A stretch of 64,000 nucleotides of DNA from Rhodosorus marinus CCMP1338 (lineage: Eukaryota > Plantae > Rhodophyta): contig JAMWBK010000002.1 in NCBI GenBank assembly GCA_029953675.1, positions 2,418,001 through 2,482,000 on the forward strand, written 5' to 3'. Position 1 is the stretch's first letter; the number at the start of each line of letters is the position of its first letter. The position numbers and the translations under genes are program-made. The notes beneath the pieces were generated by a model. That model saw only the letters and a list, made by a program, of their open reading frames with translations, did no database searches and was not told the DNA's origin. Below, one piece after another: positions 10,085 to 50,700 of this stretch.

Positions 10085-11008
10085 CTAGCCGCGCCCTCTG
10101 TCTCCACGGCCTCGACCACCACCACGACCTAACGAGCCAAACCAGACAAGACCATGTACAGCCATTGTCAGCTTCAAAGTTCTGAACTGCATCTCGTGCA
10201 TTTGTCAACTCACCTCGACCCCTTCCTCTTCCACGAGAGTTCGGCCTCTGAAAGAAACGACAAGGAAACACATTAAGAGTGAGGTGTCAGAAACGGATCG
10301 TATTACGTGAAGGTGTGCAGAAGCATGATCAGATCGTGTTCTCACATTATCCCTCCGGTTAGCGTTCTCCTCTTGTACAACATCGATGATCTCGTCGGGG
10401 ACTCTCAAATACCTGCATTAGCAAGAGCACAAATCAAGTCCTGCTTCAGATCCCTACGCTTGAAACTGAACGCAAGTCAAGAGCCTAGTTTTACGCTTTA
10501 GCCTCACTTGATTGCACTACCGCGGATGTAAATCTCAGTAACTTTCCAAAACTTCTCTCCGTCCTTCGAAGTACAAACGACCTCGCGCAAGTTCAGGTTC
10601 ATCCATGTATCGATCGAAACAAGAAATCCATTGTACGTTTCTCCAGTCTTCAGCTCGACCAGCTAACCCGCGCGAACAAGAAGGAACGCGGTCAAAAATG
10701 AAGAAAACTAATCAGCAAAAATGGAAGGGGATTCCATCCCAGCTCTTTCCATTCAAAAAACAAGAAGACTAGACAGTAACAACAAATAAAAAGAAGCAGA
10801 ACCATTCAATCGCTACGCTTTCTCACCATAGGGTGACCTTGACATGTCCTCAACAGCGACAACGGAAGCTAATCACCAGACAAAAAAATAGCACACAAAA
10901 AAAGACACACGCGACAGATTCAGTAACAGATCGATCCATCGGAGCTTTTCTGAGCCAACAAAACAGAATATATAGCGTCGCTTCTTCTTCATCCCTTCAC
11001 CTTACCAT
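10085..11008 (-). CDS. LSM4: U6 snRNA-associated Sm-like protein LSm4
   Basis: M|[14 protein letters not shown]|[52 protein letters not shown]|[10 protein letters not shown]…, with an RG-rich tail [14 protein letters not shown]. The first exon is the ATG alone (11006-11008). Confidence 0.95.
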
Positions 11009-36882: not shown

Positions 36883-38785
36883 TTTTGGCCAAGATCCAGA
36901 GCTGTAAAACCCTAACACAAGGACACAGCAGAATTCCTCGTCACGACCACGGATCTTAGATCAGCTGAGGGGGTCCGCAAAACGAAACGATGCGCCCCAA
37001 TCCTGCCTCAACCAGTCCAATACTCAAGAAATTGAAGCTCTTCGTGATCAGTCAAATCGTGCATCCACTAAATTCACACGAGATCGAGCTTTGGTAAGCC
37101 AGCACGGCCAAGCGGTCGTTCCCTTTACCTGTCTAGCTGGAAGGCATTGGAACCATTTTGCCCCATTGCCAAACCACAAATATCCGATCTGAGAACGTAA
37201 CATAATCAAGCCGAATATTTAGATTTAGAATATTGAATTTGAATAACGGAAACTAAATAAAATATGAATCTTAATATAGAAACATAGTTTTTTAATTTAG
37301 AGAATACGACCGTGATTGTTCTGAAATGGAATGTGGCTGGAAAGCCAAATGCTCCCTCGAACTGATTGAGGACGAGCCGATCCATTAGGAGGCTGATTCT
37401 CACGAGGAGGTCTCATCTTTTTGACTTTTGATGCGGACTCGTCCTTGTCCGCTTTACGCAATATCGGAGATGGGCGCTGCAATTGAGCCACGGCACCGAG
37501 AGAGTCGGGTTTCTGCGATGTTTAGGATCGCTGGTTTCGTCCTGGGGCTTGGTTTTTTGCTTGCAACCAGAGGCCCAAGATGGGGTATTGCGTGTTCACC
37601 GATGGGGACAATCTTTTTTAGCGCTTGAGAGCAGTTGTTTATGATCACTGGATCACCTCGCGCCTAGGGATACTATCACGGAGCTGGTCCGTAGGCGGTT
37701 TAGGACAGGAGAGTCACAACTCACAGCCCGTCCATTGTCGTACCACGTACTCACTGGTCGTTTCCGGGATCCGTTTGCGGAGCAATCAAGTACGTTGCTG
37801 AGTCCTCCCTCGCTGCGGAGACAGTCAGTCTCTGTCCATCCCTAAACGGCCTCCCTCAGTCCAACAGACCGCGGAACTGCTGACGCAAACTATCAAGGCC
37901 GTCCTCATCCTAGCTTTTGTGCCAGTTTCGTCTGATGAAAAAACTGGTGATAGCTTTTCTACTCCTAAATATTTTTGATTTAGCCCCATCAGACCACAAA
38001 TTACATACGTTCTCAGTTGAAAACCCAAATTCCTTGGTTTTTAGATATATTTTCGTCAATCATATCTAGATCTATGATCTAACCCTCAAAGACACCATAA
38101 ATACCCACTCAACCACCTAAAACAACGCACCAATATTCTAAATATCTGCGTTGCCGCGAATCCCAGTTTAGTTATTTAAAAAACGAACACATTACCATGG
38201 GACACTTTCTGCAAATCAATGGGCACTAGATCACAAAGTGTGAATGAGAATGACGCCCTGTCCCGGGACAGAAGGCGCGCACTAGTGCCTTATAATATTC
38301 AAAACACTATTTTATGGATGAGAATGTGAATAGAGAAAAATCAATTCTGTAATTTCTTTTCCTATTCACAAATAGGATTTTGTTTTTGCTTTTTGGGGGG
38401 TATTTTTGAGTTTTTGAAAAAGTGCCGATAGAGTTTTGTTTATAAAAACAACCGGGAGAGACAAAAAAAAAAAATCTGGGCTGGGGGAAGGGGCGCTGCT
38501 GGGTGCCGCGGGGTGCAATGTGAGTGTTACTGATTACACTCTAGACGTTTTGGGGGTACTTTGTGTGGGAGAGGGGGAGGGAGGGAGGGAGCGAGACGAA
38601 GGAGAGCAGAGTTTTTTGTTTTCTTTTTTTTTGTTCTGTGAGAGAGGGAGTCTTAGATCTGATCGAGTATCTGTATTCTGTGGGCTTTTCTGTTGTTGTT
38701 TTTTGTAAAAAAAATTTGTTGTTGAGGAGGGATTAGTTGAGGGCGGGACTATTGGGATACCTGAGGTGGGAAGCCACTCTCATTG

Positions 38786-40513
38786 ATGGGTTTCTTGGGC
38801 CCAGTTTGGCCGTCAGTTCGATGTCGAACTTCGGTGTCCATGGTAAGTTTGTTCTTTGGTTCTTGTTCCTCGGGATGCATTTTGATCCCCACCCATGTGT
38901 GCGATGGTCGACGGATCGATCTCTAAATTGTCCCACGACGTGTTGGATTTTGTTCTGATTCATTCTTTGATTTATTCTGTCCCCGCTCAAACCAACAGCA
39001 GATCGATCGGAGAGGTCCTAGCAAAAAGCAGGAGGTCGATGGAAAATATGCGGCCAGGATCGTCTCTGGATCGGCCTTGAGCTTGGCGTTACTGGTTGGA
39101 TCTCCAGCGCTTGCCGAATCGGGATTGCCGGAGGCTTTTAGATCGCCTACCCAATCGATCACATCTACTGCCAACCGTGCTGGAGAAGTCGGCCTCAGAA
39201 CGGCAGAGTCCGCCGGGGAGTCAACGGCAGCGGACGCATGGCGAGTCCTCAAGCATGCTGGAGAAGTAGGAGCGGAGAAAATGGGACCCATTGCCGAATC
39301 GGCTGCAAAAGAGGCGTTGAAAGGGCTGCAGTATGCTGGAGAGGTGGGAATTAAGACAGTTGCACCCTTAGCGAAATCTGCCGCAACAGAAGCATGGAAA
39401 GTCGTTTCTAATTCAGTAAGCTCTTCTGCCAAGAACGCTGGGATCATTGGGGAGAGTAAAGAGGTAGTCGTTGATATCGCCACCGGTGACCCCGCTTCGT
39501 CTCCGGGCAAGTCTGTAAGCGATTATTTTCGGGCGCGATTTGGACTTCCAGAGGCTAAAAAAGCTCCCCCAGTGGGTCAAGAAGATGTAAAAGGTCGAAC
39601 TGGAGGTAAAGAAGCTGAAACGGGAAAAGAAGCCGAAAAGACGAGCAAACCCAGCGCTGAGTTTGATTCCGCGGCTAAAGAAAGCAAGAGCTCCGAGAAG
39701 CCAGGAGGGAAGCCAGAAGAGGCCAAGGACTCAGCGAAAACTGCAGATCAAGAACGGACTGATGACAAGGGGACCGGGCCTGCTGCTGCACCCGGAGCTA
39801 AAGAGGCACAGGAAAAAGTTGACCAGGGCAAGGAGGCAGCAGCGAAGGTGGAATCAGAATCCTCCAAAACAGTGAAAACAGACAAGGTTGGAGATGCTCC
39901 AGCTGGTGGCCAGGAGATCGCAGGGGATGTTGCAAATGAGCAGAAAAAGGAAGGGAGTCCAGGGATGGTAACGACTCAAGAGAAAACCTCAGAGCAGAAG
40001 GAAACGGTATCCACGACCGATGCCGTAGGTGAAACGCCATCCGTGGAGAATGTTCAGGCGCAAGCTCAGGAGATCCAAGACGGGGCTCCAGCTCTCGCTA
40101 TGGAAAAGAAGCCGGGTCCAATTCAGGTGAACAAGGAATGTACCTGCCCGGCACGTGCAGAAGGCGATGCGGAGGTCATGACCACGGCGACGGGGGAGCT
40201 GCGCCCCGAAGACAAGGGGCAAGGAGGGGCTGAAGCTTCCCCGGCCCTTACTGTCAAGACTTCTGAGGAAAAGAAGGAGGTGGGAAGCGAGGAAATCCAG
40301 AAATCGAGCGTAGAGGCCGCCGAGGAAAAGCAACAGTCTGGAACTGAAACATCCCAAGGCCCCAGCTCGACGGCCTCTGAGGATAAAAAGCTGGTGGCAG
40401 CTCGAGATAACAAGGAACCAGACGTCAAAACCGAGAGTAGGCAACTCGACGCATCCCAAGACACCGCAAGGTCGTCGCGGCGTGAGCAGAGGACTACTTT
40501 GGCTCCAGAGTAA
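38786..40513 (+). CDS. Orphan predicted thylakoid-lumen-targeted protein with three 26-aa repeats and a long acidic disordered region
   Basis: Exon 1 (38786-38842) encodes MGFLGPVWPSVRCRTSVSM. Exon 2 from 38999 is in frame with the 39077-40513 ORF: QIDRR…IVSGSALSLALLVGSPALA|ES. The 3' end is uncertain. Confidence 0.75.
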
Positions 40514-41656
40514 CCCAATGCTGTCGCGTACACTTGCAGATCATCATGGATGCTGGAAAAGACTTAGTTTGGAAAGCAAGAATGGACGACGAAAATTTGC
40601 TCCCTGTTTTAGCGTTCTTTCTCTCACGTAGTCTGCCCAACAGCAGGGTTGCGAAGTTCATCTACGACCGAGCCCGAGGACGAAGGTTGAAGAAGTTCGT
40701 TCGCGCCATGTATAGCTATCCAACTTGCCTCGCAGATATTTTTATGCATTTTCTTTCAAACACGGTTCACGTTGGTTGATACGAGCTGAAATAAACCTAT
40801 CGCACAACTACCGACCACCAACCTGGCCATGAACGCAGGGCGATCTTGCTGAAACAGCAGAGAGGGACACCATAGGAGCGAATCAAAAGCTGCGAAGGCG
40901 TGCATCGATGAGCGAGTCCTCATCTCCTCCGGACCAGGCAACGATTAAGCCGATGCTAAACTAAATCCGGCTCTGGACTCAACAAGGAATGCTAAGCATG
41001 CATCTGATGGAGAGGGGAACCGTACAATCGAATTCGACTATCAAAATCCCATCTGTTAGAGCGATAAGCGTATGGCTCGATGAGGAATTCCATTTCTCTT
41101 CGCGAACAGGGAATCGCTTCACACAATACGATACAAGATCCAACAGACAAGAGTCCGTCAACCCCATTCCATGTGGCTACGTCCTTTTTTACGCAATTCA
41201 ATATCGGAGTAATGTAAATGTGAACTTCCGAATTCACAAAAACCTATCTCTTGAAGCCTTCAAATTATTTTCACAAAGCCATAATGCTCAATGAGCTTTC
41301 ACAAAAAACTATTTGCATACATAAATAAAGACAGGCTGTTAAATAGTATGAATATGAATGAGAATTGCGTGTGTGGCATAAGTAGAAACGCGGAATGGGT
41401 ATTGCTATGCTAATATTATTAATGTGAAAGCGAATACGATGGAATTCATATTCACAAAGTGCTTGTTTGTGTGGATGAGAGACGGCGACATGTTATTGGC
41501 TTAGGTTACGGCACCGTATTGGGAATCGGCTTATGTGATCCCGTTCTTGGATGGTCAGGCTCCTGGCTCGGAAAGCTTGTTTGTTAGACTTTTGAAGAGT
41601 TGCAGATTGCGAGAAGGCAGCAGTAGCAATCTAAATTGGTGAAAGAGGTCTCCTTG

Positions 41657-42498
41657 ATGGGTTTCTTGGGCCCTGTTGGGCCACCACTTCGAAGCCGGAC
41701 CTCGGTGTCGATGGTAAGCCGACGTACTCTCTGCTCGATTTTGGTCTATGTCAAAGTTTTGGAATAAGCTTTTTGATCGAAGGATCAGGGATTGAGCCTT
41801 TCCTACAGCTCGGTTTTATTGATCGGTTCTCTTTTTTGTCTAATCACCAACACTTTTGTGGTTGTTTATCGCCACGCCTGCAGCAGGTCGATCGGAGGGA
41901 TGCTCTGAAAATAGTCTCTGGCTCAGCTTTGAGCATCGCGTTGATATCCATAGGATCTCCAGCCATTGCCGAATCAACAGCAGCGAAGGTAGACCAGCCT
42001 ACCACGTTCTAGCCACGATCTGAACAAAGCATCCCTCGCAATGCCTAGGGCTGACCTCGTTGTGATTGCCTCCCTCTCTCGGTGTAGGGCATAAGCAAGG
42101 GCCGCCTGTTTCCCTGCCCACAGAATGGAGCATGCCTATCGAGCTCGAGCTCTAATCAGCCATCAAAGTACATTGCTCCATGGAGCTACGAGGGGACTTC
42201 CGATGAAGCCAAAAGCAAGCTCCTGGACTACGCAAACAAGTCTTCATCGCTTAAGGTCGTCGCTCACGATGGTGACTACGTTTGGTTAGTGTACGAAGGA
42301 GGCACCCTCAAGGGCGAAGTCGACATCGAGTTCAAACTTCGAAAAGATGATCAAATCGTTACCATCAGAGCTGCGTCGCGACGAACCACTAAGGTCTACG
42401 CATTTTCCGCTCCATCGACAGACCTAAAAGCGCTTCTTACGGGACTTCGGCAGGATCTCGGATGGGAGGATCTGGACAAAGACTTGCTGGAGATGTGA
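41657..42498 (+). CDS. DUF1499-like thylakoid lumen protein, 3 exons
   Basis: Exons 41657-41713, 41884-41988 and 42088-42498: MGFLGPVGPPLRSRTSVSM|QVDRRDALKIVSGSALSIALISIGSPAIAESTAAK|GISKGRLFPCPQNGACLSSSSSNQPSKYIAPWSYEG…DIEFKL…TIRAASR. The family call rests on the PCPxxxxCxS/YIAPW/IRxASR motifs. Confidence 0.75.
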
Positions 42499-47700: not shown

Positions 47701-50700
47701 AAGAAATCCTGGAATGGAAAGTTGGAAAACGCGAATACCTCAGCAAAGACCATCCTAAGGGATAGATTTCTCACTTGGGGAGCGCACTGGATTTCCCTCC
47801 GCTCAATACCTGGCATCTATCATAAACATTGCCGATAATCTTCAGGGGTCTACTTCTAAAATCTGCGGAGAATATTATGTCCTGCCTCTGCTGCTCAACA
47901 GCAATCGGCAGATGAGAGGTCAACCCAGATGCGAACAGCTCGTCTCGAAGTTTGGTTTCGGACTTTTTCGCACTGATAGTCGTCCCTCCCGCGCTGAGCA
48001 CGTTGGTAATAACGATATCCTTAAGGATCTGCAGTGGCAGAGAGAATGTGGGAAGTCAGTCTCTTAACCCAGAATTTGTTTCTCAACGCGTTGTATTTGT
48101 CCAAGGACACTTACAGGTCCGGCGTTCAGGGACTCAATCTGTGAAAGGCTCAGTTCCTCAATAATAGAAATACCGGTCATGCTGGAGACCACTTCACTTA
48201 GGAGAAATATTACAAGGGGGTCACCTTCCTGCATGGAATTGAAAGCGAATCCGAGGAAGGCCTTCATTTCCAAGCTCGCCGGGTATCGCCTCAGTACCAA
48301 TCCGGAAAATGCACAAAGGTTCGCAAACCTGTTCAGCGCAAAAACGAAACAACGCCGAGGGTCAGGAAACAACATTTGTGCTTGAGATCAAGCCTCAGCA
48401 GTTCGCCGAAAGCATGTTCTTGCTGCGAACCATTGAGCAATGTTTGTGCCGTCCTGCTTGAGCCTATCACGGTCACGATTCGAAAGTTGTTGAACACAGC
48501 TGTACAATAGAGTATCAAAGGCCAGATTTGTGACATAGCGGAGGGACTCTACGAGTGGTGGGATAATATTCTCGTAGCTCTTGACCTGCTCCAGCATTGC
48601 ATCAAATACTGGCATGCAGTTTCCTGTACAGCGAGATCGTCAATGGAAATCTTTAGAGCTCTTTTCTATTTTTGAGGGTATAAGGGTACCACCAAGCTTC
48701 GCCTTACCATGGGCAATCTTTGCAAGGCTGCGACCTGTATGCTTCTCGTTATCTTTGGTTAGCCTCCTGAGAACGCCCCTGGTTTCCTTCGCGGTCATCG
48801 CATTGACCACAAGCAGTATGGGGTTTTGAGCTACAGCCTCTCGTCGAAGCCAGTGGTAGTACTCAAACCTCTTGTCCAGGGGGACAGATTGGATTGCTTC
48901 CCAAAATTCGACAGAGAGAGGAGCGTTGCAACGAGTGAGGGAGACCCCAGGAAGAAGCATATCTCGAACGATAAGATCGAACAAGTCCGGATGGATGGAT
49001 TCTTTCTGTGTGTGGAAAGCAGCCGGACAGTGGAGATACGAGGATCAGGGCGAATTTGCATAAAGAAACTCTTCTTTTCTACGCTGGGAAGCTAGAAGCG
49101 CCTCCCCGGGATGAGCAGATGCTGACCAGACTTACCTTTTCAATAGACGCGAAGAACCTGGTCAACCGAAAAAGAAATCTGGTATCTCTATAGCAGTTCG
49201 ATCGAAGGACCTTCAGCATGTCGTACAGCGGATGAGAAGAGGGGTCCTTGACCCATCCCTCGACGTCCGATAAGGGCGGTACGATTCCCTGCTCCATGCT
49301 TCCCAGCGGAAGGTGACCTCGTTTGCGACTACCATGGGAAGCAGACCCTAAAAGGTGATGTGTCAAAAACCCCAGACGTAAGCTTTCGGGGTCCGTCTCC
49401 ATTATCACAAGCCTAGAAATGTCCATGCTCTGTACCTGCATAGTTTCCGGCCTGTGCAAGTATTGAATCAGCGAGGGATGTTAACGCTTGCGCCACCGAG
49501 CCGTGCAGAGCAACATCCAAAGACGTAGTTTCCGTTCCAAGTCTGGTAATTACTACTTCAGCTGTACTCCAATCTCCAAGCCGAAGGGAAGCCGCGAGCA
49601 AACCGATTTTTTGGCAATTGCTTCCTTCGTATGGACCCCTTTGTAAAAGTTCCAGCTCTTCCTACGAAATCAGGTACAACAATGCAGCGTGTTGGTCGCC
49701 AGAAACGGTGATGCCGCATTCATCTCGATCTTCCCTAGTGTCCTCCTGCGCCTTACCTCATTTGTCAACTCCTTTTCAATCTCATCCTTTGCCAAGCTCA
49801 CAATCTGCACCTTCTTCGCCAAAGCCTTGCACTTTTCCCGGAACGTGGTTTCTAGCAAACACAACGGGTCCTCTTCACCGCTGGCGGGGTCTTGAGGACT
49901 CAGATGTGGCCAGAGATTATCCAGCTCGACTAACCCTTCCCTCACGAGCAATGCCGAGACGTTCAGAACGGGCATAAGCGTTCTATCGTCGCTCCTCGAC
50001 CCTTCCTTTTCGACATTGTCTTGCTTGGCGCCATCCTTTGCTTCGTGGTAACGCTGAAGCTTGAATCCTATTAGCTGTGTGATGTATTCGATCTGAGAAA
50101 CGTTCCGAATCAAGTCAGCTCTCCAACGTTGGATACTGGCATAGGTTATCAACCGATAGTTGAAGTGCGAGTTGAAGCCCGGGGTGGACGTTCTTACTCT
50201 GTACTGTCTGAGGAGCTTATTGAAAAACAGTGGCAGCTTGAAGCTCGCTGGTGAGTCAATAGGAAGTCGTTGATCGCGAATTTCCAAAGCGGTCAGAGCA
50301 ATATCAATAACTCGAGTTGGGTCGAGATCGAAAAAGCCGATCAGACTTTGGACGGTTTGAACTCGTCTTGAACACGCGTCTTCGTCCGTCAAGTCCGGCT
50401 CCACCGCAAGATCCACAAGCTCTACAAGCAGCTTACTAAACCCTTCGGATTCTTCCCTTAGCAGGTTGAACTTGCGCTGGGTGTAGAATATTCTTGTGTT
50501 GGTAATGACCACCTTCTTCGACCACCACTGCGCGGTTCGAACGAGTCCACTGACTTCAAGGATCTCCGGTTCAAGCCTCTCTCGGAGCAACCATTCATCC
50601 ACAAGCTTTCGTTCGTTGATCATCTTCACCATACTGCTCAAGCACGAGAACGACGTTTTCGGCTCCTTGCTGTACGGTGTCATTGTATTTGCAAACCTGA

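Follow-up and report, generated by a model that had tools for sequence, protein, structure and literature searches.

Two neighbouring genes of the red alga Rhodosorus marinus CCMP1338 (class Stylonematophyceae) begin with the same two-part N-terminal leader and then continue into unrelated proteins. They lie in tandem on the plus strand, 1.1 kb apart, within 64 kb of nuclear DNA that we refer to as the window: gene A (38786-40513) encodes an orphan protein, and gene B (41657-42498) encodes a protein with a DUF1499 domain. The leader is truly homologous DNA that is confined to the presequence, and a real, specific and old local duplication of the presequence is very likely. Taken as a whole, the best explanation, which we consider likely, is that this duplication moved the leader of gene B onto the orphan gene A.

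The window is part of contig JAMWBK010000002.1 in assembly GCA_029953675.1, which represents the nuclear genome of R. marinus CCMP1338 at chromosome level (PMC10250338). A protein annotated on this contig is 100% identical to the product of gene A, and the three-exon model of gene B gives exactly the 189-residue GenBank protein KAJ8907953.1, "hypothetical protein NDN08_008056 [Rhodosorus marinus]" (called P0006 below). The comparison set consisted of three contigs taken from the transcriptomes of two other R. marinus strains: the mRNA of gene A (L002, with a 533-aa open reading frame, or ORF, called P0010), an MMETSP0315-derived transcript of gene B (L004), and an unspliced gene B locus (L003). 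A gene B ORF from MMETSP is called P0009. In total, the alignment of the leader includes five sequences from three strains.

The first exons of both genes are 57 nt long, opening with ttgATGGGTTTCTTGGGCCC and closing with ATG|GTAAG, as described in an earlier note made from the letters of this stretch, and they are identical in 47 of 57 positions; the encoded peptides are given in Table 1. BLASTN and a repeat finder extended the match to 70 nt with 84% identity (38778-38847 vs 41649-41718, E=4e-17) and detected two further matching pairs in exon 2 (38996-39026/41881-41911 and 39098-39120/41953-41975). In a shuffle test on segment-wise global alignments, the start context with exon 1 scored z=18 and the exon-2 module z=14, and no similarity was seen in the flanks, that is in 192 nt of the 5' untranslated region (UTR; z=0.6), in intron 1 (z=0.9) and in the next 200 nt (z=0.4). 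The breakpoint alignment proposed in the earlier note thus limits the homology to the interval from 8 nt before the ATG to two codons past the Ala-x-Ala (AxA) motif, which in exon 2 corresponds to the initial ~90-120 nt. A and B also have the intron at the same position and in the same phase (phase 0 after codon 19), as confirmed by transcripts. In 48 aligned codons of the module the two genes differ in 36 of 144 positions, distributed as 11/4/21 over the three codon positions, and the ten differences of exon 1 alone are distributed as 4/0/6. Such a pattern indicates a translated sequence under purifying selection.

Resemblance of this kind could in principle reflect a generic or convergent motif, either the typical red-algal lumen presequence (MxF..., RR, core, AxA) or an element present on many genes, and F-type N-termini are indeed general in rhodophytes (PMC7038456). 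This reading is, however, difficult to combine with the degree of DNA identity, which includes the 8 nt before the ATG, with the identical position and phase of the intron, and with the identical codons at 20 of 33 conserved degenerate residues (the corresponding number for gene B between strains is 36 of 44). The 17-mer ATGGGTTTCTTGGGCCC, with TTG just before it, has two sites in the window and no others even when three mismatches are allowed, and no other F-type first exons or RR signals beyond those of A and B were found there. A profile of the five leaders compared with 1.84 billion representative proteins retrieved only the gene A ortholog (57.6 bits, in an entry without exon 1) and, by chance, one unrelated repeat protein, and thus no third carrier of the leader, although the sensitivity of this search was limited by stored ORFs that often lack the N-terminus, so that the cluster representative of gene B was itself missed. 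A leader present on many gene families should have given several profile matches. A word-index search among 5.8 billion proteins with residues 1-52 of the B leader yielded only 14 word-sharing candidates, none of them scoring, which excludes only a large near-identical family. The scan of metagenome contigs with the leader alignment produced 157 pattern matches, none of which was confirmed, in a collection without Rhodosorus transcriptomes (L002 was missed). The possibility raised in the earlier note that the same N-terminal DNA occurs on many unlinked genes thus found no support in the window or among the representative proteins, and we regard a generic motif as highly improbable.

Behind the leader the two proteins are unrelated, as had been claimed. 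The mature parts show no homology (BLASTP E=15); gene B matches the Pfam family DUF1499 (PF07386) in residues 61-153 with 55.5 bits (cutoff 22.6, E=9e-15), whereas gene A matched no Pfam family. A tblastn search for remnants gave none, neither of DUF1499 within or behind gene A nor of gene A behind the B leader. The lack of a DUF1499 remnant at A implies that only the 5' part of the gene was copied, or that the rest has since been lost. The second variant makes A and B whole-gene tandem paralogs, the entire DUF1499 gene having been copied and the mature domain of A having later diverged or been replaced; it differs from the best explanation only in the amount first copied. The tandem, same-strand arrangement at a distance of 1.1 kb agrees with it, and with neutral sequence already unalignable the remnants could have vanished. 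On the other hand, the mature parts have neither protein nor DNA similarity, they differ in length (462 residues in A vs 140 in B) and in the fraction of disorder-promoting residues (71% vs 52%), gene A has no counterpart of the second intron, which in B follows an exon 2 that stops six codons past AxA, and the B domain is clearly constrained (dN/dS of 0.20 between strains). Copying of the whole gene therefore seems improbable.

The direction of the transfer would follow from the distribution of the two families. DUF1499 corresponds to CPLD48, a conserved plant-lineage protein (PMC3186191), which fits a plausible plastid location of the gene B product; a comparison of the DUF1499 protein with bacterial and archaeal genomes found no related loci. 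As the B family is old and widespread and A is restricted to the genus, parsimony suggests gene B as the donor and gene A as the recipient.

The maximum-likelihood tree of the module places the two A copies in one clade and the three B copies in another with support of 100/100. This clustering by gene means that the duplication is older than the splits between the strains and was not followed by recent gene conversion; recent A-B conversion was considered and ruled out on the same ground. An old event, after which only the selected coding parts are still recognisable, agrees with introns and UTRs that can no longer be aligned. The local recycling of a targeting cassette suggested in the earlier note is therefore upheld as far as the homologous leader and the tandem position are concerned, but the event was not a recent one. 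Between strains, dN/dS is 0.05 in the exon-2 signal of gene B. For the mature part of gene A the overall value is 0.61, the repeats having 0.38 and the C-terminal two thirds ~0.77. Intron 1 of gene B is 79% identical between strains (the window vs L003).

Transcripts define the splice junctions. In L002, a 218-nt 5'UTR precedes the coding sequence, and intron 1 of gene A is removed at the junction ...GTGTCCATG|CAGATCGATCGG (ATG|CAG), so that the exon at 38786 is spliced to 38999 as the earlier note had predicted. The junction of gene B in L004 is ATG|GTCGATCGG (ATG|GTC), with the distal AG of CAGCAG in use, and both P0009 and the GenBank protein P0006 agree with it. A common start of both second exons at CAG, also claimed from the letters, is thus correct for A only; in gene B the acceptor (CAG|GTC) lies 3 nt further, at 41887 rather than 41884, and the protein reads ...SVSM-VDRR without the Q. 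A tandem CAGCAG ends both first introns (38993-39001 and 41878-41886), of which gene A uses the proximal AG, keeping the Gln, and gene B the distal one; the gene B locus in L003 has a single AACAG acceptor.

Thylakoid substrates of the twin-arginine translocation (Tat) pathway carry an RR pair directly before a moderately hydrophobic core, followed by AxA. In gene B the segment D-R-R-D-A-L-K-IVSG... has RR directly before the core and a hydrophobic residue at +2/+3. In gene A the copy near the core reads GK (GR in L002) and the intact RR stands 15 residues upstream of the core, so the core-adjacent twin arginine is a feature of B only, and the core and Ala-x-Ala are present in both proteins (Table 1). 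The exon-1 peptides both have Phe-3, four Ser/Thr, two Arg and no Asp or Glu, in agreement with a stromal transit signal (an early aromatic residue, hydroxylated and basic residues, few acidic ones), and Phe-3 is kept in all five leader sequences from the three strains. F-based N-terminal plastid targeting signals are described for rhodophytes and glaucophytes (PMC7038456, Knopp et al. 2020; PMC2222254). Intron 1 separates the predicted stromal part exactly from the thylakoid-type part, after an invariant Met. Judging from these sequence features, the presequence is rather likely to be a plastid and thylakoid address; the thylakoid lumen as the destination, and the translocase used, are predicted from the same features.

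Gene A has 12 extra residues relative to gene B in this region. The B junction (GCAG CAG GTC GAT CGG AGG GAT GC) matches gene A at 38995-39018 in 20 of 24 positions, a score reached in none of 2000 shuffles, and again at 39027-39050 in 18 of 24 positions (p=0.0015); in L002 the two junction copies match each other in 16 of 21 positions (p=0.0005). Two adjacent matches to one junction identify the insert as a 30-nt tandem duplication that took in the final bases of the intron. QIDRR is read in the upstream copy and VDGK (IDGR in the other strain) in the core-proximal one, a state common to both strains. The insert and the displacement of RR from the core had been correctly recognized in the earlier note, and its origin can now be recast as a duplication of the junction. 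A switch of gene A from Tat to Sec, also proposed there, is a tentative suggestion to which we give somewhat less than even weight; it comes from the loss or displacement of the proximal RR in A and from nothing else.

The events can be combined as follows. In an old local tandem duplication, the DUF1499 gene would have had its 5' part copied, from the start context through exon 1 and intron 1 to the beginning of exon 2 that encodes the signal, probably together with promoter elements, and the copied leader would have come to head a different, lineage-specific ORF, gene A. Exon 1 would provide a short, acid-free, Ser/Thr/Arg-rich F-type stromal transit signal that ends with the phase-0 intron after the invariant Met, and exon 2 a signal of the bacterial type with a basic n-region, a core of ~15-19 residues and Ala-x-Ala. 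The product of gene B, with RR directly before the core (RRDALK), would resemble thylakoid Tat substrates. In gene A, the junction duplication would have pushed the intact RR upstream while the proximal copy decayed to GK or GR, and the protein would more likely use Sec or another route.

Besides the limited sensitivity of the profile search, several observations weigh against this account. The hydrophobicity of the two cores is equal (mean Kyte-Doolittle 1.76 in both), and neither protein matches the Tat-signal profiles of Pfam (E<=1) or NCBIfam (E<=10), although these profiles are bacterial and short, so that a non-match is only weak negative evidence. Exon 1 of gene A shows four nonsynonymous and no synonymous changes between strains. 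The other observations concern the start codon. GenBank and older NCGR ORFs begin gene A at the junction Met; in GenBank the coding sequence (CDS) begins only with the final codon of exon 1 (38840), so that the first coding exon has 3 nt and the product 505 aa. In L004 (380-437), the exon-1 ATG is shifted out of frame by a 1-nt deletion (ATGGGT to ATGGT, in the context cATGGTTTTG); from this ATG a 25-codon upstream ORF would open, with the main ORF starting from the junction Met (MVDRRD...). The in-frame peptide of L004 is still GFVALVGPALRSRTPLSM despite this deletion, which may be real or an assembly error.

Accordingly, exon 1 might be a conserved 5' leader or upstream ORF, translation starting at the junction Met, so that the two products would have an ordinary signal peptide at the N-terminus, leading to secretory entry or, with two starts in use, to dual localisation. 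The annotated start of gene A and several transcript ORF calls agree with such a start, as do the frame of L004, the invariance of the junction Met in all five sequences, and the enrichment of ATG|GTAAG in the window (6 sites vs 1.09 expected from shuffles). It is contradicted by the upstream AUG, which no other AUG precedes in the L002 mRNA and which four of the five sequences have in frame, by the 4/0/6 distribution of the exon-1 differences, and by the preservation of Phe-3 and of the acid-free Ser/Thr/Arg composition. Moreover, P0010 begins with MGFLYPVGRSVRCRTSVSM, and GenBank gene B and P0009 likewise begin at MGFL, the neighbour being annotated from the equivalent upstream ATG, and DUF1499 is a plastid-lineage family. 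We give this alternative little credence, and translation of exon 1 is well supported, if not proven. The public model of gene A thus omits 18 in-frame codons starting at the first AUG of the mRNA, and the annotation is corrected here by this length.

The string ATGGTAAG itself is found at 11001(-), 14900(+), 38840(+), 41711(+), 48703(-) and 53756(+). At 11001 and 53756 the string is closely preceded by stops in frame, and these two sites could mark introns that follow a start codon immediately; the site at 48703 falls within the THOC2 gene.

Gene A has the properties of an orphan gene. In a word-index-limited search of 5.8 billion proteins its relatives came from Rhodosorus only (59-63% identity), an mRNA contig (L002) is present, and the frame is kept: in both strains it stays open for >460 codons, and the indels preserve it. 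Its mature part has a net charge of -18, and the AlphaFold model, computed from a four-row alignment, has a mean pLDDT of 34.5 and shows helices nowhere but in the repeats; the low pLDDT is compatible with disorder but is not proof of it. The repeat unit is ~29 residues long, and the 87-nt unit occurs three times at 96% identity in L002 (503-767) and once in the window (39226-39315). Tandem Repeats Finder detected no coding-region array in gene A of the window, where the repeats are too diverged; the array is visible only in L002. The stored gene A ORFs have 456, 486 and 533 residues, a difference in copy number, and the array is either still changing or collapsed in some assemblies.

The end of the B leader (...PAIAES-TAAK together with the first 6 nt of intron 2, 36 nt in all) has in-frame echoes in gene A at 39288-39307 (17/20) and 39837-39852 (15/16). 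The sequences are CCATTGCCGAATC... and CAGCAGCGAAG|GTAGA, the latter running across the exon/intron boundary, and a codon shuffle gave P = 0.001 for both echoes summed. Of the two, the other strain has retained only the echo at 39288-39307 (P about 0.01-0.04); the one at 39837-39852, which resembles the boundary of exon 2 and intron 2 of gene B, is absent there and was dropped. Seeding of the repeat array from the 3' end of the leader, as the first echo would suggest, is a lead rather than a finding. A 19-nt inverted repeat with 89% complementarity (39096-39114/40060-40078) is also present in the gene A CDS; one of its arms is the c-region of the leader (TTGGATCTCCAGCGCTTGC), and it may be due to chance.

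The in-frame echoes, the 87-nt unit still expanding in another strain, and the invariant junction Met together prompted a further reading, in which gene A was born from the duplicated leader: once the 5' end of the DUF1499 gene had been copied along with its promoter elements, translation ran past the signal into formerly non-coding sequence. The cleavage-site region would then have been repeatedly duplicated, seeding the 29-residue array, and the junction Met would be the start of an ancestral signal of the cyanobacterial type to which the stromal part was added upstream later. If this were true, the new gene would have possessed both an organelle address and regulation from the outset. We think such an origin rather unlikely, and retain the transfer of the B leader onto an orphan gene as the best explanation.

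Short motifs are also shared upstream of the two genes. TGTGAAT occurs at eight sites in the window, and five of these fall in the ~650 nt that precede A or B; TGAATGAGAAT, an 11-mer, is limited to 38241 and 41355, and ATTCACAAA to 38364, 41232 and 41450. Both TGTGAAT and TGAATGAGAAT are present in L004, the contig of the gene B ortholog. These motifs may be a relic of the copied promoter or a shared regulatory element. The 5'UTR/promoter region of gene A (38570-38720) contains the GGGAGGGAGGGAGGGAG purine tract followed by long T runs, and comparison with the other strain shows partial conservation of the 5'UTR (81-88%). The flanking genes are ordinary, with Peptidase_M3 upstream and Tim17 and THOC2 downstream.

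Table 1. Features of genes A and B and of their upstream regions, in window coordinates.
Feature	Position	Strand	Remark
Gene A, upstream motif cluster: TGTGAAT at 38239(+), 38325(+), 38364(-); TGAATGAGAAT at 38241; ATTCACAAA at 38364	38239..38372	+	
Gene A, start context TCTC(A/C)TTG, just before ATG	38778..38785	+	A-B alignment begins here
Gene A, exon 1, 19 codons, MGFLGPVWPSVRCRTSVSM, F-type stromal transit-peptide-like, ends ATG|GTAAG	38786..38842	+	
Gene A, intron 1, 156 nt, phase 0	38843..38998	+	absent from L002 mRNA
Gene A, exon 2, whole	38999-40513	+	
Gene A, exon 2, junction copy 1, QIDRRGPSKK, RR kept	38999..39028	+	
Gene A, exon 2, junction copy 2, QEVDGKYAAR, RR decayed to GK	39029..39058	+	GR in other strain
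Gene A, hydrophobic core and AxA, IVSGSALSLALLVGSPALA	39059..39115	+	
Gene A, mature part: ~29-aa helical repeats, then low-complexity Ala/Glu/Lys/Ser-rich tail	39116..40513	+	
Gene B, upstream motif cluster: TGTGAAT at 41232(-), 41450(-); TGAATGAGAAT at 41355	41232..41458	+	
Gene B, start context and exon 1 (41657-41713, MGFLGPVGPPLRSRTSVSM)	41649..41713	+	annotated in KAJ8907953.1; in P0009
Gene B, intron 1, tandem CAGCAG acceptor, distal AG used	41714..41886	+	
Gene B, exon 2: VDRRDALK, IVSGSALSIALISIGSPAIA, ESTAAK; thylakoid-transfer-type, RR adjoining core	41887..41988	+	
Gene B, intron 2	41989..42087	+	model matches P0006 exactly
Gene B, exon 3: DUF1499 domain and stop codon	42088..42498	+	Pfam PF07386

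The gain of an organelle address usually has to be rebuilt from old and scattered cases in land plants, whereas here the probable donor and recipient stand side by side. The locus combines an exon split between the predicted stromal and thylakoid parts, three strains for dating, and a fast-evolving orphan recipient. It is therefore suited to the questions whether a whole bipartite leader can be reused as a unit, whether an F-type exon is enough for plastid import in red algae, and which pathway is chosen once the twin arginine has moved away from the hydrophobic core.

Bipartite lumen presequences are typical of Tat substrates such as the 23-kDa and 16-kDa subunits of the oxygen-evolving complex in plants. 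The leader of gene B appears to have the same order of elements, with a stromal part, RR before a moderately hydrophobic core, and AxA; the Rhodosorus leaders differ in that the stromal part is F-type and only ~19-22 residues long, and gene A lacks the core-adjacent RR. In comparison with the F-based targeting signals of other algae (PMC2222254; PMC7038456), made by motif alone, both leaders share Phe-3. With respect to DUF1499/CPLD48, the mature part of gene B scores above the Pfam threshold and gene A has no trace of the domain.

Presequence gain by duplication or exon shuffling is already known and has been discussed in general (PMC7456531). Its closest parallel here is the transit peptide of plastid SOD1 acquired by RPL32 in Malpighiales, Populus among them (summarised in PMC8018952 after Cusack & Wolfe 2007 and Ueda et al. 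2007). As with RPL32, a leader with its intron would here have been copied from a resident gene for a plastid protein onto a non-homologous mature protein, and in both cases the homology ends at the presequence. Unlike RPL32, the Rhodosorus recipient is a lineage-specific orphan and not an organelle-transferred gene, it has remained next to its probable donor, the cassette has a bipartite layout (stromal and thylakoid-transfer), and the host is a red alga with F-type transit peptides. The locus is a clean red-algal example in which a bipartite leader stands on an orphan gene.

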